Shown here: one piece after another, positions 522-25,615 of the stretch
Layout: each line of letters opens with the position of its first letter
Position numbering within the stretch: the first letter of the stretch is position 1
Assembly: GCA_964057225.1 (NCBI GenBank)
Contig: OZ059899.1
Coordinates: 13,640,001-13,704,000, forward strand
Length of the DNA stretch: 64,000 nucleotides
Reading direction: 5' to 3'
Origin: Auanema rhodensis
Lineage: Eukaryota > Animalia > Nematoda
Program-made: the position numbers and the translations under genes
The notes under the pieces: model-generated
Seen by the model: the letters and a program-made list of their open reading frames with translations, nothing else
Told to the model about the DNA's origin: nothing
Database searches by the model: none

Positions 522-741
522 CTTTCTCTAAAACTTCTGTGCCTATATCTATATCTATACTATATATTTTACTCTTTTTAACTCATAATAAACGTTTAAA
601 AACATTAATTATTCTGTTAACTATTACATAGAATGTTATATAAGAGTTCATAACTCTTTAAATATATTTTATATTCTCTTTTAATATCGTTTTCTATTGC
701 TTTTTCTTTATTATTAATAAGATTTTTCATTATTTTAGTCC

Positions 742-1677
742 ATGAATGTATCTCCCATTGCTTCAACTACATCTAATGGTTACGTCAAATACCAAATAAA
801 GCCATCAGGTTCATTCATTTTCTTCAAATAACATCATTGTTTATCATTTATATAGGAATGCCACGTATTCTTGCTGAAGATGCTGATGTATTTTCATTAG
901 AAGATCATGATGAGGAGCCACGAGATGTTCAAGATGAACGAAATAGGTAAGTGTTATGTTGTATTCCAAGTTTGTGTTTCAATCCCCGTTTCTCTCTCTC
1001 TCTCTCTCTCTGTTCTGCCAGCTTTAAGCTGATTTTTCAATGTCTGTTGTTTAGCCAGACAATAATCTGCTTTTTCCACGAAAAGCATCATTTCGAGATA
1101 TAACTGAAAATAGATATTACTAATCGTTTGACGTCATTCAAATCAATGATCTCCTATTCCTCCCCCTCCTACTAGTTCTGTCTTTTTCTAATAAAATTTT
1201 AAAAATCAAATCAAATTTAATCTTATAAAACAAAAATTTAAATTTATAAATTCTAGATTACCTGTTAAAGAAGAAGAAAAATCACGTTTATTTGACTGTC
1301 CATTAGATAGTGATGATGAAAAAGAAGATGAAGAAGAACAAATGTCTAAACTTCGTAATGGTGATGATCGTCAGAATACACGTTCACATCGTAAGTCGTT
1401 TTCATCTGAATTTCTTATTCACAACAACTTATCGCAGAAGCTGTTGGAAGCAAAAAGGAATGTAGTCGATTAACTGATTCATTTGACTTGGATGGAGATT
1501 CTCTATCAGATGAATTAGATTTACTTCCACCAATGCCAGGTGCACCAAATGCAAATTCATCATGGATGAATAAGTAATATCATATACTATATCTATATAG
1601 TTAATATAATTAATTTTAGATTTCATCGTTTAAACTGCTGTAATCCTCGAATACCGAATAAATGTGTGATTCAATAA
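742..1677 (+). CDS. FAM219-like small acidic protein with C-terminal CaaX (5 exons)
   Basis: GT-AG exons 742-808, 856-946, 1257-1390, 1438-1573, 1620-1677 join in frame. The product contains LDSDDE and DSLSDELDLLPP and ends LNCCNPRIPNKCVIQ*, resembling the FAM219A DLDLIPP...C-x-I-Q tail. Confidence 0.7.
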
Positions 1678-3489
1678 CAAACGGATAGTTCATTCATCTC
1701 AACTTATCTACTCAACTCTCAACTTATTCACGCTCCTATCTTATTTCAAAAATTATAACTTTATAGGATCTAATCACTATAATCCTTCATATTAATCAAC
1801 TTGTTCATCAATTTCTCATTAATTTTGATCTTATTTTCCATAATTCATCTCTTGAATGTACGGGTATCATTCTATTATTTCTGATCTCTCACTCACGACT
1901 AGTCCTACTACTTTTGATCTTATTTCACAAACTTTTTCTCCATTAATCTTAATTATATGCTCAAATTGCAATAATCATATTATTATTTTTTTAATAATAA
2001 TAATATTTATTTCAATATTAAATAAACTTTTTTTAATTTTTAATTTTTATAATTCAAATCAGCTGCATCTAATATCCAAAAATAGAATAGAAGGATATGT
2101 ATGTCATATCATAAAGCATTAACTATCACAGCAGATCCATAAACAAAAGGAAAATTTTTGTTTAAAAAACAGCATTTTTCATCATAAAACTTGAGATTTC
2201 ATTCAAGTTTTCATGTTTTTTCGTGTAGTCATTCAACGTTTTTTCAAAAACTTTAAAAACTTATTAGCAATACATGTATATACATGGATGTAGATTTGTA
2301 TTATTATGATGTATTATATATTTAAAAATTAAAAAAAAAAACAAATATGAATTAAAACTTATCAAACAAACATTAGTTGAAGTTTTAAGTTTTGATTTAT
2401 AAAAGTTTAAGATTCATCTCGTGATATGATCTGAGCAATTCATTCTATACTTGGGTAAGTCGACTACACCAACTCAAATTTGACTTTTCTAAGCTAAAAG
2501 TCGAGAGTTGTTTCAAAACTAAGAAACCTGAATCAACTTGAAAGTGGGTGTCTTCAGAAATTTTGAAAGTGAACGATGTTCAAGTACAATACATTCATTC
2601 ATTCATGAATTATGTCCATGTAAAAGCTAATGATTTGTATTTTAATTTTAATTATTTCATTTCAATATTTTTAATTTTTTTTTCAGAAAATGATGAATTG
2701 ATGTTAATTTTTCTGTATTTTTGTGTGAAATATTGCTATATGTATATACAATTTTATAATTTTTGTTATATTTTTGGCTTTTTTTTGGATTTAATTATAA
2801 ATCATCGTTTTTCATTTTTATCAATTTTTTCTTTAATTTTCTTCCTGGTTTTTTTTTCAAAATTTACATTTATTTTCTTATTTTATTTATTAAATTTCAA
2901 CATTTGATTTATTTTTCTTCTAAAAATAATCTCTAAAATCATAGATAAATCAAAGGATTTTCATTTTTATTGTAGTTTTCAGTTGTTTTACAGGGAATTA
3001 TGAAATTTTCATGTTTCACATGTTCTTAATGCTATTTAGTTTATAAATAAATTCAAAAATATTTGCTAATTAAATCTTCAAAACATATGAACAGCTTATG
3101 CAGATGGCTATGTCTTTGCTTCTGCTTATAAGCCTTTTCGGCTCTTCTGCATATGTTGCCACCCCTCCACCCTCCACCCCTCTCCGGCTCAATTCATGAA
3201 TAGAAAAAATATGTTGGAGAAATTATTTTTCATAGAATATTATATGATATAAGTTGTTTCCAAAAATCAATAAAAGAAAAAAATTATCTAATTATTTAGT
3301 TTTTTTCTATCCCTGTTATCCGCTGGTTATAATAATAATAGCAAGTCTAAGCTTAGGCTTAAACCTAAGTTTAAACTTGAGTCTGAAAATTACAAAACTT
3401 AGGGCAGTTAATAAATCTAAACCTTAGTTACTAGATATCTTTTTAATTTAATGAATCGAGAAAAATCTTTCAGCAATTAAACTTATTCT

Positions 3490-3585: not shown

Positions 3586-5323
3586 ATGGAAGAAGTTCCA
3601 AAAGATTTACCAGATCCAACATTCTTTGATTTAACTTCAAATGTTGTCAGTGTTATATCATTAATTTTCTTTCTTTTAAATATTTTTTTATTTTACAAAT
3701 CAACAAATAAAAATGAATCAATAGAATATAAATATACTTCATTTATTCAATGTGTAAGTTTATTTTTATTTTTACGTAAGTTTTTAATAATTTTTTCAGA
3801 TATCATTGTTCTTAGGTTGCTTAATTTGGACATTTTTTGCTCGTCTTTATCAAGTTCCAAATGAACATTATTATTATTGTGAAGGACATTTAATGGGATT
3901 ATCTTGTATGTTTTGGTCAATTATGTTTAATTTATTCCATGGAATCCAAACAGCTTTATTAACAATGTCATTCTTATATCGTTGGGAAATTCTATCAGAT
4001 TCTGATCACATACTGAAGGTAATTACATCTATCTATCTATCTATCTATCCAGATGATCTATTCATCAATTCTTCTAACTATATATATATATATATTTCTT
4101 AGAATAAATTATTCTTTTATGGAATATATATAACAAAGATTATTATTTTTCCTATTTCATTAGGATATACGTTCTGGTTTGTATCAGATCCTGATTATGA
4201 TATACATCAACATAGTTCAAATGTAATTTCACTTTTTTCCTTTCAATTGCTTCGACGAAATATTGAAAATCCAATTATTTTTTCAAGTTTAATGAAGTTC
4301 AAATTCAATTTCTATTGGAAAGATCATTCACTTATCTACCTAGTTCACGTGTTTTGGGTACAATTACATATTTAGCTGTTGGATCAATAATAAATCTTAC
4401 ATCACAGATTGTAAGTTATAGATATGGATCAGATCCGCATTTTAATCTTTCGGATCAGACCGTTTTCCGGGTTCTGCATAGTTTACTAGAAATCTGAATG
4501 TATGCTTCTTAGGTGCTTACTCAAGTGACTTGTGCCCCTATCTTTTTGTTTTTGAAAAATTAAGAAATTTAAAAAAATTAAATAAAATCCCAAAATTTAA
4601 CAAGAAGACTGATCCGGTCCGGTCCGGTCCGCAAGATCCGCAGTATATTATATAGTTAGGATTATGTTTTTTTAGTTTAAAAATCAAAAATACAGATATT
4701 CGTGTAGCAAAATCACAATTTTTGCCCATCAATCTAATACATTTTAAGATTATATTGATTCAAACTTTGTATAAACTTTGTATAAACTTTATACAAACCT
4801 TAGAATAATTTCAGATTATTATAGTTTCTGTTTATAAGATTGTAAAACAAATTAAACAAAAAGAATTAATAATATCAAGTAAAGCAGCTATGTATCATCG
4901 GGCTGTCTTGAAAGCTTTATCAATTCAAGTATATTCACTCTTCTTCTTTCATCTGCTATTTCTTATTTTTTTTTCAGACAATTTGTATTACAATATCCTT
5001 AATAGGAGCTTTCAGTATAGCTGATCTTCAAGTATTTTTTGAAATTCCAAATAGTTAATAAAACCATTTTATATAATTAATATAATTATCTTTTTAAGTT
5101 TTACAAGAATTATCACTTATTATCTATGGATGTGCATATATTATGAATACTTTAACTAATTTTTATTTTAATTCTTTATATAAGGAAACTATTAAAAAAA
5201 CATTTATATCAGTATTAAAGGTTTATTTACATATACATATTATTGTAATTATTTTTTATTTTTCAGATTCAAAATGCTGTTATGTCACAAATTAATTCAA
5301 AAATTACTCCAAATAATCAATAA
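3586..5323 (+). CDS. Nematode serpentine 7TM chemoreceptor (Str/Srh/Sri-superfamily-like)
   Basis: Multi-exon hydrophobic protein: MEEVPKDLPDP..., YKY motif after TM1, 'YYCEG..', 'FLYRWEIL', 'SKAAMYHRAVLKALSIQ' before TM6; stop at 5321-5323. Confidence 0.75.
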
Positions 5324-5574
5324 ATTTATTTTAATATATAAAAAATAAATATTCTCTATATATATATTTCTCTAATATGGTATAATTAATAATGAAAATT
5401 TTAAAATTGAATAAACATTTGTATTTCCTCACTACATTTTTCATTTTCGAAAAAAAAAATTAATTTTTTTTTGTATTACAATATTCATTTTTTTTTATTT
5501 TCTAAAAATATTATTATTATTATTATTTAAATTTATGTGTAATGTTCATAACTTGAATATCATAATTTTGAGTT

Positions 5575-6073
5575 AAAAAAAACTTGAAGCATGAATTGTA
5601 TTCATACATGTTCTTCCTGGTTGAAACATGAAGCATATAGCTGTCCCTCTGTAGCAAATATTTATATCTGGATGTATCGAATTCTCAGTGATTGATCGTC
5701 CGATCAATGCTACTTCTATGTTCGAAATACCGTTAATGTCCTTACTCGTCTTTCCCAACAGAGTTATTCGTAGCAATGTCTACTTACGACTTCCAGGACT
5801 TTTCTAGATCTTATGAATCCTTGTTGCTTAGCATGCTGACTCATTGCAATGCTACTCAGGTCTGACCGGAAGAATCTGTGCTCTCACAGACGTAGGTACT
5901 CCATTTTTAGGAAAACAACGGCCTCAGTAAATTTCTTTTACTGAATAGTCTGTGAATTCACAGACGTGATTAATCTCTCTGAGGGATTTGTTTGAGATGA
6001 GCAGTCCTAATAACTGCCTTGATGGAGATATCAGTGTGTTGTGAAGATTGCGAAACAACAAACTAAATCATCT
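5575..6073 (-). ncRNA. Candidate Pol III-transcribed structured non-coding RNA (~500 nt), family unidentified
   Basis: At least 10 stem-loops in an intergenic, GC-richer island. On the minus strand: TATAAATA at 6102-6095 upstream, T8 run at 5582-5575 downstream, and several G-U pairs that favour this strand. Confidence 0.55.
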
Positions 6074-6094
6074 AAGAAACTAAGAAATTTTACC

Positions 6095-6125
6095 TATTTA
6101 TACTCAATTGCTTCCGTCCGAAGTC
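6095..6125 (-). promoter_or_regulatory. TATA box plus PSE-like element of the candidate ncRNA
   Basis: Minus strand reads CTTCGGACGG-AAGCAATTGAG-TATAAATA. The TCGG core loosely resembles the nematode snRNA PSEA (TGTCGGCNGC) and sits about 10 nt before the TATA. Confidence 0.4.
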
Positions 6126-6705
6126 TTGTACTTTGGTCACATCATCCTCTCTCTCTCTCTCTCTCTCTCTTTCTGAGTTATCAGTATGCTTCATGTGCTC
6201 ATCTTCACTAACTATATCATATAATAATAATAAAATTGTTTATATAAAGTAGAAGTAATTGACAATATCTAATACACAAAATGAATATACGATAAACAGA
6301 AAGAAATAATGAATGATTGATTGATCTAAAGATCAAAAAAAAAATAAATAGCCTACTGTCATTTTGTATTTTTTTTTCTTTTTTTTTCTTTTCGAAAAAA
6401 AAATTGACATAAATGGAATAGTAATGATGAGAAAAGAAAAAGATCATTATAGAATGATGACCAATTATAGATCAAATAGAATACAGTAATGAGTGAATGA
6501 ATATGACCATGGGGTGGGATGGGGGAAGGGATTGTTGAAAATTCTCAGAAACAGCGTACGTAATGGACGACTCTTAGAAGAAAAAAAGTTGTTTTTGTTG
6601 ATTAAAATACATATTTAAGTAAATATTTTTGTAAATATAATATATATATATATATATTTAAACTTCTTAATGTACATAAAATATTTCAGATTATCTTTGA
6701 TTTGC

Positions 6706-9700
6706 TTAAACTGGAACTGGTGGAGGTGTAACATTAGCACATTCTCGTTGATATCTGTTACAGCAAAGAGTTTGAACGTTCTTCACATCAGCTAATAGTT
6801 TACAAGCCTGAAGAGAGATTATCAATCCAATTAACAACTTATTCCGCAAAGTGATAAGCCTACCTTCCATTGTTGAGAAACTGAAGAGAAGTTGTGACGA
6901 TGAGCCCAATCAGCAACCTTGATGAGATAATCGTCGAAGTATGATTGACAAATCTTCAAATCATCTTGAGCACAAGCTAAAACACATTAATTTGATGATT
7001 GACTGAAACTGAAACGAGAACAGACTTTGACTTGGAATGGCAGATGTAGATGAGACGATGCCACTTGCATTTTCGGTTTTTTCGATCGCAGTCGTTGTTG
7101 TTGTGACGGAATTATCAGCATTTACTGTAGTTTTGACTAAATGGAAGAGAGAAATGAGCAAATGATAACGAGATATGAATCTAACCTTCAGCTGGTTGCT
7201 CAGAACCAGTAACTAATGGCTCTTCACCACTTCCTTCTTGCTCATTACCCTGAAAATCAGAATTTAAGATAAGATATGAAGATAAATATCAGTCACTTAT
7301 GTATAGTTAACTATACAATATGATAAATTATGTTTTCAAAATAACCTGAGAAGAGACATTAATTGAATTAGCAGTTGATGATGTTAGCATAGGCTCAAAA
7401 GAAGAAGGAGAAGAAGAATCTACAGGAATAACTGGAGCAGAAGATGCTACCGTAGGCAAAGCAGAAGAAGAATCTACTGGCATAACTGGAGCAGAAGATG
7501 CTACAGTAGGCGAAGGAGAAGAAGAATCTACTGGCATAACTGGAGCAGAAGATGCTACAGTAGGCGAAGGAGAAGCACTTGTTGATGGATTAGCATTATC
7601 AATCAAGTTCTGAATTTATTTTGTTATTTGCATGCACTTATATAGCTTGTTGATGTTTTTGTTATTCAAGCTACACATTGCTATATCTAACTTACCACAG
7701 TAGATGAAGCATTCAAAGTTTCATTTGATTGAGAAGCATTGTTAGCAATTTCAGATGTTAGATTTGATACGGACAAGTCAAAGATTGATTGAGCCTGCTT
7801 TGGTTCGTCAGTGCGCTCTACTTCCATTCCGGAAGATTCAATCGGTGCAGCATTTTCTCCTTCGGGAGCAACCGTGTTCATGACTTCTGCGCGATTTTGA
7901 AGAAGCACAGATGGAGCTTCTGTCAAAACTGCATCATTGTTTTCAGCTGGCTTAACAGTTGTTGAAACGACATCAATATTTGCAGGAGGGGTAGTTGACA
8001 GTAATTGATCTGCTTCTGTTGGATTAGATAAAGCATTTGAAGCATTGTTGCCGGTGTCCACAGCCAAAACTTCTTTTGGAATATTGGAAGGAGTTGAAGC
8101 AAGGCTTTGTTCAGAAACATTGTTTGCAATTATATTTGAATCAGTATTATTGTTTAAAGGTTGTTCAGTTGGGTTAGAAAGCGCCTGAAGGTAAAAAACA
8201 TTTAAAACTAAAAACTTGTCATATATAGTTGAAGATGAAAAGCAAAAGTAACAACTATTCTAATTGAATCTGAACATACTTCAGAAGGCTGTGATGTGTT
8301 AGATGATGTAGCAGCAGCTGGTTCTTCACCTGATCCTGAATAGAAAGAACATGATTCAAGATATTTTCAGAGTTCAATGGAGCATAAACTCGTGATTCAT
8401 CAAAGATTACCTTGTAGTTCTTGAAGTTCACGTGAAGCAGATTCGAAAATTCCACCTTGCTGACCGCTTCCTTCTTCGACGACAACCTTTTCATCTTCAC
8501 GCTTAGGATTTTCGACACTCAAAAGTTCTTGTTCAGGTTCTTAAAAGAAAAAATAAATATAATTTACATATAATTGAATAAGATACTATATATAGATAGT
8601 ACAAATATAGTTCCTTAACTATACTATATTCAAGTTATTTCAATAATTTTATAATATTTGATGTATAGAAATGAAAAGAAAATGAGGCAACTAACCAGTT
8701 TCTTGAGTGAGATGCACGTTCTTCTCAACAACTGCATCTTCAATATCATTAATAGGAGGTGGTGAAGCAGCAGTAGATGACGCGGATGCCATCAAAGATG
8801 AGGACACAGATTCAGAAGTGTTGTCATCAGAGTTACATTGGTCAATGTCACAGACAGTAACAGCAACTGGTGAATCCTTAACTAGTTTTATAAGAATTGT
8901 TATAGTACATAAACTATATATATATATAGTATAAATAAATAGAAATAGAAAAGAAAAAGAAGAACATATGAACTGACTTATGAATTATAATTATAAAATA
9001 TTATATAATAAAGTATTATTATTACCTTATGTTTCTGGATTATAAAATCGTTCTTCTTCTTAGCATATGTACCACCAAGAATTGCAATTTGTACAGTAAC
9101 ACAATTATTTTGCTAAATTATAATAATATATACATATAGTTAATGTAAAATAATAATAACATACCATACGAGAAGTTAAGAATGATTTAGAGATAGCAAG
9201 ACTCAATCGTGTTTTATCATCGGCAACATCAAAAGCCTGAAACAATCAATACATAAATTATTTTTAATTTGAAGAATTAATGCTTTACTTGAAGTTTCTG
9301 AGCACTACTGATGGTTTCATCATTTTCAGGAATAGAATATCCGATACTCTTATATCCTCCAGTATGTAGTACTTTGCCATTTTCAGTAAACGCAACAACC
9401 AAGTCCATATCCTTAATTTATAATTAATTATAATAAAAATAAATTTAAAATAGTATATACAACCGATTATTCTGATTTTAAAAAATAAAATGAAAAAAAA
9501 AAAGAAATTTAAACGATGTTCACGTATATCACGTTGTTTAAATTCTGTTACACGTTAACTATTAGTATATGCTAATCAGCTTAACACCGTTTCAAATATT
9601 TAATATAGAGATAATGAATGTTATAAAGGTTGGATCAAAGGATTTTAATTTTTTTAATCAGAATTTTCAATAGAAATAATTAATAATATTATTGATTAGA

Positions 9701-14205: not shown

Positions 14206-16671
14206 GATAGCTGGATATAAGAGTATGTATATGTGTGAATAGTATATATATTTGGATATATGTGTAGGTGTAGTGATGTGCTGTAAGTCTGGAATGAGGA
14301 GAAGCTTTAGCTTTTCAAAGTATTTCTAATAAGATATAAGAATGAATGAGGAAGTTGCAGATGAGAGAGAAGTAAGATCACACCCAACTGATGGAAATTT
14401 ACGACTAAGAATGACTGGAATGAAATTCAGATATGATGTGGAAAGTGAGAATCACCAACACATACACACACACATATACACAGAAGCAAGGATGGACTTG
14501 AAAGGGGCTGGGTCTGGCTCAAGTTGACTGGCTCCGCCCCAAACATTTAACACGCTTCTGTATTCATTATAGAAGTCTAGCCCTTTCACTGTATTAACAA
14601 GTATAGAATAGAAATGAGAGATAGAGGGTGAGAGAGAGAGAGAGAGAGATGTAGAAATAGAACCAATATAAGTTTTGATGAAAAGGGTAAGTAATTAAGC
14701 TATGTCATAATTTCATAATATTTTTAGAAATTCTGGAGACGAAGTACATCAACACCTTAACTTTACCTCCAATTTAGGAAAAAAAGTTGAAGAGGCCTCT
14801 AAGAACTTTTTGTTATTATTATTGACAAGAAGTACAGCACAAGCATAGTTTCAAGTTTTTTTTTCGCGAAAAACTCGAGGACATAGGTAAACAGCTGGAT
14901 GGCTGCCCTTCGTTGGGACTTCTTTTTCATTTCTTATACGGTATAGTTAGAAATTGAAGAGCTAAGATAATTGAGGTGCAGATCAAGATTATATAGGTTA
15001 AAAATAAGGAAAAAAGAAGAAAGAAGGAGAGAGGGGTGAAGGGTAGAAGGGACCTGTTTGGAAGAATGGTAAAAGCATGGATATGAAGAAAAGAAACGAC
15101 ATAAGATTATAGAAAGAAAGGGATGACAGCAGACATCCGAAGCCAAAAAAAGAAAGGCAAGAAGCCGACTCTCCTTTCGTCATCATCATCATCATCATAG
15201 TCGTCTTCTCTTGCTTTCGGAATAGAAAAGTCAACAAGTGTGTCTGAGGGCATCATTAGTCTTCTACTACCAATGGGTAGACAAGGTCGACACGAACCGG
15301 GTCTCGCATATAGTGTGAGGAAGCAAAAACAGATTCATCTCAGGAAAGTCCCTCCTCTCTCTCTTTCTCTCTACGTATTTCTCTCTCTATATGTACCTTG
15401 TATATACAGCCATTTACACTAACCCATCATTCATTCATCCATATTTGGAACGGATTTCGAAGCTTTGTCTTTATACTCTTCATTCATTGCTTATTTCTCT
15501 GTATCTGACTGTCTCACCTGAACTTTTCTTAGGAAAAGGCAACAATACATGTTTCTTCTCAACTATCATCTGATTCCTCCACTTTCATTAAGAATCCCTT
15601 CATCTTAGCTACATCTTTGGAGATAATTGTCATTCTATATATCTAGTGGTATCTTAAAAAGAAAAGATAATTACTTACCTTAAAAAGGTTATTCAGACAG
15701 CAATCTTCTTAATATTTACTCAAATCGAAGAGAGAAAATTGAAAAGTAACCAGAATTACAAGTTATTAGAACTCTTTGAACGATCCGAATGACTCAATAA
15801 CATCAAAGATCACTAATCAGATTATTAGACATATATCTATATCATGCTCAAAAGGTTGATTTGATCTATAATATTGATATTTAACTTATTTCGGATCAAA
15901 ATACAACTTTGTCTACCTAAACACATACTTGTTTCATCTCGATCTCGTCAAAACTGCATTTTATGATGGATTAATCTAGCTTATTGTATATTTCGAAACG
16001 AGAATACATTACTATAATTCAAATATTAGCTGCGATAATGATTATGATGAGGAGGATGTTTATAAGTTTAACTTAATCAGTTTCATTTTCCATATAGGAA
16101 ACTAAAACTTGTTCTGAAAAATTGTTTCATAACTGGTTTGAATGGGAGAAATGAAAAGAAAATTTCATCTAATCACTTCCAAGTGTTTGTTTATCTTTTC
16201 ATAACTGTCCAACAAACTTTTAATTTGTCCCAAAAACTTACGGCTCCGTTGAAACCATTCGAGTTTTTTTCTGTTCTTCACAACTCCCCCCCCCCCCTTC
16301 TCTAGCCACTTGATTTAACTTTATTAATTGCAAAAAACTTCTTAATGGCATGTTTACAAACAACTTTTACTAATAAAGTTTTCTATAATTTTCTGTTAAG
16401 TAATACTGAAATTTTATAAAAAGTATGGTTGATCATATGTCTAGGGGTCTAGTCTTAAAAGCTGGACTACAAGGTTCAGTTGTCACATTGTTTTCCGGTT
16501 CGTTTCATTGCATCATAATACGTTTTTCTCAAAAAAAATTGGGACACTACTCTACAAAAAGATGACATTTAGATACAAAAAACTTATTTGTATAATGGGA
16601 AACATTTATTTCTCTTTCAATTTATTGTTTTTCTTTGTTTCAGTAGTTTCAAGTTAAAATGCAAAACACTA

Positions 16672-16744
16672 AGCCCACGGCCGGGATCGAACCGACAATC
16701 TTCTGATTAGAAGTCAGACGCCTTATCCATTAGGCCACGCGGGC
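16672..16744 (-). tRNA. tRNA-Arg(TCT)
   Basis: GCCCGCG-TGGCCTAATGGATAAGGC-GTCTGA-CT[TCT]AA-TCAGA-AGATT-GTCGG-TTCGATC-CCGGC-CGTGGGC-T gives a full cloverleaf with A and B boxes. Confidence 0.96.
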
Positions 16745-22780: not shown

Positions 22781-25615
22781 TTATTTTCTAGCAATAAAGT
22801 CATTACTAATTGGACTATCACTCATACATATGCCTTTATTATTATAGAAAGGAGGGCAACATTGTGGTTCGTTACATCCTGCGATTGGAGTAGCAACTCT
22901 GAAAAAATCGGTTTAATGATTAATGAATGAGAAAATAATAAATTCAGGAACATACTTTGTGCAAACAGCTCCATTACATAATCGATTAGGTGATAATAAC
23001 TTGGCACAATGCTTATCTACCGGACAAGCTTCCATATTGCATGTACTAAACTCTTGTCTACGCCCGCTGAAAAGTTTAAAAAAGAATTTTGAAACTTTGA
23101 AATAATTTCTTGAAAAACAATGATGTAATACGTACTCGCAATTTTTGGTTCGGCATGTTCTGGCTCGTGACTTGATACCACATCCTCCACAGCTTCTGCT
23201 ACATTGTGACCATGGACCCCACTCTGACCATATGTCCGAACCAGCAATTGTTGTTGGAACAGCTAAATTAATTTAAAAAGCCTAAATACTAAAAGAAAAA
23301 TCTCTTACGGGTAGTAGTTCTCATTACAGGAGCAGGTGTAGTACGAGATGGAGCATCAGCTGAAAATACAGTATTTAAATATAAAATATGAATATGCTTA
23401 CTAGCTCGAGCACGAATTTTGAAACCAACATCACTAGATAAGGATGAACGGAAAATTACGATGGCATTATTGCTCTCCGAAACAATACTTTCTGAAGGCA
23501 TTTCATAACAACATAATCTGGAAAATAACCGTAGAATATGCAATTTCTCCTTAGATAATTTACCTGAATCCTGTATTTCTAAGATCTTTGGAAAGTTTGA
23601 GTTCAACGTAATCAACACAAGTTGTTGTGCACAAGAAAGAAAAATCTTCAATGAATTCTAATTCAATTCTTTTATCTTCTTGTGCCTTGAACGAAAATTA
23701 TAAATAGGAATTGAAGCTACTGGCATACCTTCAATAACCAAGAACATTTTTGATTCGGCTCGTACCCAGGGTCAGGGAAATCTGGAGAATTGAATTCAGC
23801 CCAATCTTCTTTCAATTCTAATATTCCTCCACATTCAGCATCTGTAACTCAACTCATAAAAAGATTTTGCAGTTAAGTTCATACTTTCTGGTGCTTCAGG
23901 CTCTTCACAAGTTTTTCCACCTAATCCGTTTGGACAGAGACATTCTGAGCATTTGCCGGGATGAGGATATCCACCATGCTTGCATTGATCGGCCGGAGTT
24001 GAAGCACATTTGTCTCAAATTCAGATATGATAATTTCATATTTTATGAAAATAAAACCTTTACAGTATGCCGTATTAATTGTTTGAATATCAAAAAATGA
24101 TAAAGTTTCTCTTTGTCCAATTGTTGATTGGTATAATGGATCTCTGAAAATTACATGAAGTTTCTGTTTTACTTTTGTTTTTAATAAAAATGCCTTGTGA
24201 TTAAAGTTTTGCTATTCTGATCAGAACTGAAAGCTGTACTTCCATAATGCATAACTGAGCCCAGATCATATGGTACTCCTAATGTATTAATTTCATCTTC
24301 TCGTGTTTGAAAATCAGAAATAAATGAAGGAAGTATATAGTCTTCTTGAACCTGAACTCAATATAAATTCTGGTAAATTAAAATATAAAAACCTTGATGA
24401 AACTAAGAGCATCAGGCCGACTTTGTTGATGCCACAATCCAAGAGCATGTCCAATTTCATGTTCAATAACACCCAACTGAAAAATAATTATAATAATGAA
24501 AGAACAGGTTAAATCATTGAAAACTATTCTAATACTAAACGATAAAAATAAAAATATTAGAATGAAAAAATACAAAACAGTAGGTCTTGGCCGGGATCGA
24601 ACCGACGACCTTCTGCGTGTAAAGCAGACGTGATAACCACTACACCACAAGACCCTATGAGAGCGCCGTCTCAGTACTCGACAACAAGACAGAGATAGTA
24701 GAAAAGACTTGAGCATACTTTCACGCAGCTTTCTCCTATAGACACACCCTGTCGTCCACCGTTACGTCCAATCATAGAATAGCATCTAGTAGAAAGAACA
24801 TCAAAAAACTAAAACATGGAATGAACTAACCCTTGACCTTTGAAAAATTCTAAATGGTCTTCTTCTTCGAATGCATCGGGAGCATTAAGAAAAGACAAAC
24901 AAGTAACGTTTTCCCAAAAACGAATGCCAGTAATAATCTGACGAACAGCATAGAAATCTTTAAATCGGAAAAGTTTTCATTGAAAATAAGAAAAATCTTA
25001 CCTAAGCTTTCATGAAATTTGTATTTAATAGGAAGTTCAAGCCATTTCTCTTCTTCATCAGAAACGAATGAGCGACGATCTATGATACTCAGTGGTAAAA
25101 TGCTTATGAGGAAACCTATTACCTCTTCCATCTTTTCTTTTTTTTTTCTCAATATGAGAAATACTTTTTAAAATTCCAATAGCTTGACTTTTTGATAGGA
25201 AGATGTCACCTAGAAAACAAAGTTGTAACTCAAAAACAAATGAATGAATTACCTTCAAATAGGTATGGACTAACTTCTTTCACAACAGCTGGTTGAGATT
25301 CACTAATAGAAACTTCTTTCTTTGAATCTTCTACAGCCTATAGAGCGTAATTGAAGAGAATTATACAGCATATACATTTTCTTACATCATTTCCAAAAAC
25401 TCTGTCGCCATATACTCGACGATGAGCCAACTTTTTCATTTTTAACAAAAGTGAGCTGACAGAATCAAGCTGGGAATCTTCTACTTTGAAGAAAGACTTG
25501 AAAAAACAATTATTTTCACATGAAATGATTAGCGAACCTTGAATTCATCTTTAGCATCTATTTGTGCATATGCCTCATATAGCATGAGAAAATACAAACT
25601 GTATCTGATGAGCAT
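22781..25615 (-). CDS. nas-36: Astacin metalloprotease with EGF, CUB and TSP1 domains (NAS-36-like)
   Basis: [17 protein letters not shown]|[23 protein letters not shown]; Met-turn [11 protein letters not shown]; [14 protein letters not shown]; EGF (CKHGGYPHP), CUB, TSP1 ([18 protein letters not shown]). Confidence 0.88.
24582..24654 (-). tRNA. tRNA-Val(TAC), inside nas-36 intron 24477-24718
   Basis: GGTCTTG-TGGTGTAGTGGTTATCAC-GTCTGC-TT[TAC]AC-GCAGA-AGGTC-GTCGG-TTCGATC-CCGGC-CAAGACC-T cloverleaf. Confidence 0.96.

Follow-up and report, generated by a model that had tools for sequence, protein, structure and literature searches.

A GC-rich island between two convergent genes

We analysed a window of 64 kb in which a GC-rich island lies between two convergent genes. 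A chemoreceptor-like gene on the plus strand (~3586-5320, read by eye) points its 3' end at the island, and a DOMON-domain gene on the minus strand faces it from the other side. By window composition, the GC content of the island is 0.39, against 0.15 and 0.21 in the flanks, which bears out the GC-richer island described in the initial annotation. Upstream, the DOMON-domain mRNA has its 3' end at 6225-6244 on the minus strand: an RNA contig of this gene, spliced at 6806-6863, ends at 6225, 19 nt past a UAUAAA word at 6244-6239. Because the contig ends there, the island falls outside the visible DOMON mRNA, and the idea that it continues the DOMON 3' UTR was set aside. No run recorded as RNA contains the island stretch; the contigs of the single RNA run show nothing over it, which counts neither for nor against its expression.

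The spliced neighbour genes were searched exon by exon, one query being a contiguous stretch that reads into introns. The best relative of the DOMON gene is found in Auanema sp. JU1783 (43-93% identity per exon), where the gene order is the same, namely hgo-1, a small CAAX gene, the DOMON gene, Drosha, and an astacin gene. The small CAAX gene, a multi-exon gene at 740-1680 (+) directly after hgo-1, ends in a CAAX motif, has no Pfam domain, and is conserved in Auanema sp. JU1783 (P0032). In the DOMON gene, the Ser/Thr/Pro-rich stalk contains a 54-nt coding tandem repeat with 3.2 copies (7404-7575, minus strand). Upstream of this gene (14469-16357), several blocks that look non-exonic are 72-96% identical in Auanema sp. 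JU1783, and these are probably regulatory sequences or 5' exons. The window also carries tRNA-Arg(TCT) and tRNA-Val(TAC) genes at 16672-16744 and 24582-24654 (minus strand), and Auanema sp. JU1783 has tRNA genes at the matching places.

Promoter-like elements and T runs on the minus strand

The minus strand of the island carries a PSEB-like element at 6112-6124, with a TCGG core at 6121-6118, followed by a GTATA/TATA box at 6095-6103, within which TATAAATA occupies 6102-6095. This box lies 29-30 nt ahead of a purine start, A6073/G6072, and a T8 run is located at 5582-5575. Placing the start by its spacing from the TATA box, we predict a ~495-nt RNA spanning 6073 to 5575 on the minus strand. 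The TATA box, the TCGG element and the T8 run reported in the initial annotation are thus all present where it had placed them. In C. elegans, the UM3 promoter consists of a PSEB and a GTATA box, and its transcripts end at T runs (PMC2527325). The layout of the island equals that of UM3, so that it displays the promoter feature of a Pol III type-3 gene in a form resembling the C. elegans layout. The 64 kb hold a single match to the promoter pattern; a loose version of it is expected to match 0.24 times by chance, and the pattern therefore carries little weight by itself.

Ahead of the T8, the minus strand contains one T4, whereas the plus strand contains a T4, a T5, and another T4. An equal freedom from T runs is seen in 98 of 1272 window stretches of the same length. 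Together, the UM3-like promoter and this asymmetry of T runs support the earlier proposal of a putative Pol III type-3 architecture. The internal T4 that had been flagged as the possible end of a ~160-nt short form does exist, but at 5915-5912 instead of 5916-5913, and may act as a leaky terminator. The terminal hairpin and the T8 are likewise both present, but are not contiguous: the 3' end of the unit consists of an 8-bp hairpin (5607-5589), 6 nt, and the T8, and no internal loop of the SL4 type is seen in it.

Hairpins and predicted folding

Most of the stems listed in the initial annotation exist as perfect or G-U-containing arms. Perfect Watson-Crick arms of 6 bp each are found at 5607-5630, 5829-5854, 5875-5890, and 6037-6060, with further ones of 8 bp at 5924-5944 and 4 bp at 5744-5764, and 5948-5965 is a perfect 18-nt palindrome that gives 7 bp with a 4-nt loop. 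Those at 5589-5607 (8 bp) and 6000-6018 (7 bp) require G-U pairs and both form on the minus strand, in agreement with the claim that such pairs extend stems mostly on that strand. The stem at 5691-5708 proved shorter than listed, with at most 7 bp around a loop of 4 nt, which an eighth pair would shrink to 2 nt. A long-range helix, 5899-5904/6022-6027, had also been proposed to close a multibranch domain. Its two strands are complementary, but the helix is absent from the predicted fold; a local hairpin (5913-5899), which the second copy described below supports, occupies its 3' side.

Compared with shuffled sequences, the minus strand is enriched in hairpins, with 10 non-overlapping hairpins of at least 6 bp against 5.1 in the shuffles and no shuffle out of 300 reaching 10, and the plus strand has 9 (P = 0.027). 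The whole unit (499 nt) gives MFE z scores of -2.31 on the minus strand and -1.78 on the plus strand, so that the shuffle comparison returned a clear excess of minus-strand hairpins but a modest signal for the molecule as a whole. This signal peaks at 5900-6019 (z -3.7); the last 116 nt show none beyond shuffles, and for the 3' 230 nt the fold is no more stable than in shuffles.

Read along the minus strand, the unit is composed of a 79-nt 5' domain, a hairpin-rich core common to both copies, and a 3' part (5791-5583). The 5' domain (6073-5995, z -2.25) contains a long hairpin at 6066-6031, a hairpin at 6018-6000, and a weak closing helix, 6073-6069/5999-5995. It is followed by repeat hairpin A (5967-5943), GUCUGUG-N4-CACAGAC, which is a 25-nt internal duplicate and loses two pairs in copy 2, by the 8-bp hairpin at 5944-5924, and by a multibranch core domain at 5922-5818. 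The core domain comprises hairpins at 5913-5899, 5891-5874 (repeat hairpin B), 5870-5856, and 5854-5829, and differs in copy 2 by wobble and pair-gaining changes. The 3' part holds a GAUC/GAUC hairpin with CAUUGAUCG (5709-5691) and two 3'-terminal hairpins (5630-5589), in a region whose folding, taken as a whole, does not surpass that of shuffles. The 25-nt unit with a GUCUGUG-N4-CACAGAY hairpin is present twice, 74 nt apart (P = 0.005), and shorter internal repeats occur at spacings of 44 and 142, all of which suggests that the unit grew by internal duplication.

A second copy of the core

We aligned public sequencing contigs to positions 5100-6900 of the window and found, in three DNA runs, a second sequence that matches 5792-6001 and whose flank below 5792 is unrelated. 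The depths of the two copies are similar (for example, 811 vs 612 and 8.8 vs 8.5). Equal depth in three runs, together with the unrelated flanks, indicates that copy 2 is probably a paralog and not an allele. No second copy was found inside the 64-kb window, and among the versions listed at 80% identity or more there is one other besides the window copy. The sequence of copy 2 was rebuilt from its listed differences to the window copy; as the listing leaves out differences in the outer 30 nt at either aligned end, it is fully readable for 5822-5971 only, and over this stretch it has 84% identity, with 24 substitutions and one 5-nt insertion. Copy 2 also has a 28-nt loose end beyond 6001, and the 3' part of the unit (5791-5583) cannot be aligned with it at 80%; what can be seen of copy 2 stops short of its promoter and ends. 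In one run, a low-depth contig carries copy-2 letters over 5839-5922 and 154 other letters below 5839; it may stem from a third copy or be a chimera. In another run, a break near 5811 interrupts the contigs of the two copies, and the depth there steps by ~200.

Copy 2 keeps 35 of the 39 pairs in a hand model of seven helices, losing 4 where 9.2 are expected (P = 0.008), although these helices were chosen partly with both copies in view; when the pairs are taken from copy 1's own predicted fold only, retention gives P = 0.04-0.2. For the minus strand, the energy of a two-sequence consensus gives P = 0.057; for the plus strand, the value is 0.30. Within the 8-bp hairpin, copy 2 loses one pair and carries a double change from A-U to G-C at 5938/5930. 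The hairpin at 6017-6001 differs in sequence but keeps a 5-bp stem in which two pairs are changed on both sides (chance ~0.03). Three pairs are gained in the hand model, and of the one-sided changes, four pair only on the minus strand and two only on the plus strand. We regard these paired changes as fair, not overwhelming, evidence that selection may have acted on a minus-strand fold. The internal T4 is broken in copy 2 by 5913 A>G, and the similarity runs 120 nt further, which favours the long form over the ~160-nt form.

Searches for homologs and known RNA classes

The unit matched no Rfam 15 family at the gathering threshold, and hits at E up to 10 were junk only; neither Rfam 15 nor the literature searched holds a match, consistent with its initial description as undescribed. 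The proposed check in related genomes did not reveal a homolog. None is visible in the syntenic interval of Auanema sp. JU1783, where there is ~8 kb of N, and none was found at the DOMON-gene loci of three Caenorhabditis species or in one Logan contig. Where the window has the chemoreceptor-like gene and RNA unit, the JU1783 interval (L001 14930-24930, L002 10641-20641) has a collagen gene that had not been called, a satellite of ~85 nt, and extended gaps. A 14-nt exact match within it (L002 10835-10848) was dismissed as chance (E 4.2, without a promoter). Metagenome scans, a viral scan, and BLAST against phages and plasmids were blank for the unit. Its four open stretches have no coding signal, no Pfam match above cut-off, and no transposon protein remnant.

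We then compared the unit with the hallmarks of known RNA classes. For RNase P and MRP RNAs, it contains a CR-I-like word, GAAAAGUCC, at 5804, as well as GARAR words, and neither a partner strand for the P4 pseudoknot nor a CR-V was found. Assuming the canonical nematode hexamer as the telomeric repeat, the longest match to a TTAGGC template is 6 nt. No Sm site, as sought for an Sm-class snRNA or SL RNA, occurs in the unit, and the absence of RNase P, MRP, U-snRNA, and telomerase-template signatures, noted by eye in the initial annotation, thus agrees with our tests. There is no UGAUGA for a box C/D RNA, and the CUGA words at 6034, 5927, 5859, and 5688 are not terminal in the long form. The last ACA (5599), as sought for a box H/ACA RNA, is inside the terminal loop and not three nt before the 3' end. 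For an sbRNA or Y RNA, the UUAUC motif is missing, and pairing of the 5' end with the 3' end is not above chance in the long or the short form. A likeness of the unit to U4 and a stretch of 8 nt complementary to U6, both noticed by eye, were dropped; the K-turn does not form.

Proposed model and alternatives

We propose, with a probability of roughly 0.6, that the unit is a genuine, unclassified, duplicated structured Pol III RNA that serves as a protein-binding scaffold or decoy. That it is a real RNA gene, in a long or a short form, appears quite likely, and it probably belongs, as a non-coding RNA gene in its own right, to a small Auanema family with two, perhaps three, copies. The structured minus-strand RNA gene postulated earlier is supported by the promoter, the asymmetry of T runs, the changes in copy 2, and the mRNA end at 6225, but the folding signal of the whole molecule is modest. 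We infer the transcription of the unit, its polymerase, its RNA ends, and its partners from the sequence. By analogy with the nematode UM3 class, SNAPc and TBP would assemble on the PSEB-like element and the TATA box, and Pol III would start near 6073, mostly read through the internal T4, and stop at the T8. The product would be a ~495-nt RNA with a U tail, which a La/LARP7-type protein may protect. Along such an RNA, short hairpins would follow one another, with the core (~6030-5792) conserved and the 3' part, grown by internal duplication, specific to each copy, and the repeated GUCUGUG/CACAGAY hairpins and neighbouring stems could be its protein sites. Since it has no template, P4 pseudoknot, guide boxes, or Sm site, a protein-binding scaffold or decoy is its most likely role. 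More tentatively, the unit may represent a new rhabditid family of long Pol III RNAs with at least two loci and repeated hairpin modules, forming either a new scaffold or decoy RNP or a rearranged nematode 7SK.

Two alternatives concern whether the long unit is functional. The product could be a ~160-nt RNA ending at the internal T4, the remainder then coming from read-through or being left over from a longer ancestor. In C. elegans, four T suffice for Pol III, the first T4 being where the majority of reporter transcripts terminate (PMC2527325), and most of the region with the strongest folding signal (5900-6019) falls within such an RNA. However, copy 2 lacks the T4, the downstream stems at 5913-5829 persist through wobble changes or changes that add pairs, and the T4 itself is part of a stem, which makes the short form quite improbable. 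A minor rival, also improbable, is a decayed mobile element or duplicated relic (a MITE, an LTR piece, or a SINE-like element), in which the hairpins and promoter-like words are leftovers. It would account for the second, dispersed copy and for why no counterpart is seen in the syntenic interval of Auanema sp. JU1783. It would also suit a perfect 12-nt inverted repeat, 5626-5637/6185-6196 (P = 0.015), which brackets most of the unit and the promoter and has a near-copy at 5582-5592. Yet there is no target-site duplication at this inverted repeat and no transposon protein remnant in the open stretches, only one other version was listed at 80% identity or more, and the paired changes fit selection on the fold in a unit with a clean layout from promoter to terminator.

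Two further alternatives accept an RNA gene and assign it to a known class. In one, the unit is the missing 7SK RNA of nematodes, or one of its paralogs; 7SK is a Pol III transcript that binds HEXIM and keeps P-TEFb in an inactive state. The promoter class and the size range fit, the 3' hairpin with its U tail may do so, and the GAUC/GAUC hairpin contains CAUUGAUCG, which we take to be a 7SK-like word and which, picked after the fact, occurs in 0.4% of shuffles. Nematode HEXIM binds cyclin T (PMC4227133), and the earlier C. elegans 7SK candidate has been disputed as a U8 homologue (PMC8406779) and is TMG-capped (PMC2943600); the literature searched contains no settled nematode 7SK. However, the hallmark GAUC pair of 7SK belongs in the 5' stem-loop (PMC10083321), whereas in the unit GAUC occurs only at 5810, 5705, and 5697, and the paired ones form a 3' hairpin at nt ~365 that lacks bulges, including the bulged U, and lies outside the part common to copy 2. 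The duplex energy of an M1/SL0-type 5'-3' helix is no better than in shuffles (P = 0.68), and neither Rfam 7SK model (RF00100, RF01052) matches at E up to 10. The 7SK-like identity offered as an example in the initial annotation is thus not upheld: the unit falls outside 7SK on these features, and that it works in a 7SK-like manner is unlikely. The other assignment, to RNase P/MRP RNA or telomerase RNA as a paralog that has diverged strongly, draws on the CR-I-like word at 5804, the GARAR words, and a Pol III type-3 layout typical for P and MRP. It is largely refuted, and very improbable, given that a P4 partner, a CR-V, and an Rfam match are all missing and the template match is 6 nt.

Animal type-3 Pol III genes are few in kind: those for U6, U6atac, RNase P, MRP, 7SK, Y/sbRNA, and vault RNAs, and for some telomerase RNAs and snoRNAs. 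If our preferred reading of an unclassified scaffold or decoy RNA is true, a 500-nt type-3 member under apparent selection on its fold that belongs to none of these classes would mean a new RNP. In addition, as nematodes have a working HEXIM and no undisputed 7SK, the locus is a concrete, testable 7SK candidate, and the host worm, being culturable and CRISPR-accessible, suits the testing of candidates.

Comparison with known systems

Caenorhabditis telomerase RNA is, like the predicted product, a multi-helix RNA of several hundred nt, but it is intronic and has an H/ACA end and a TTAGGC template (PMC12921731), none of which applies to the unit. With RNase P and MRP RNAs, the unit shares the promoter class and a CR-I-like word; in contrast to them, it has no P4 pseudoknot and no CR-V, and it is twice the usual nematode size. 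7SK RNA resembles the unit in its type-3 Pol III layout, its length of 330-500 nt, its many hairpins, and possibly its 3' hairpin and U tail, and one GAUC/GAUC helix is present in the unit; this helix is 3'-located and unbulged, and the unit differs further in having no M1/SL0 5'-3' helix and no match to a 7SK model. Compared with C. elegans sbRNA/Y RNA, the unit is 3-5 times longer, its 5' end is not paired with its 3' end, and it has neither the bulged-C lower stem nor the UUAUC loop motif. With the sbRNA/Y RNA genes driven by UM3 promoters (PMC2527325, PMC4450293), it nevertheless shares the PSEB-like and GTATA elements, the oligo-T end, and the organization as a small multi-copy family, and its repeat hairpins contain GUG/CAC pairs.
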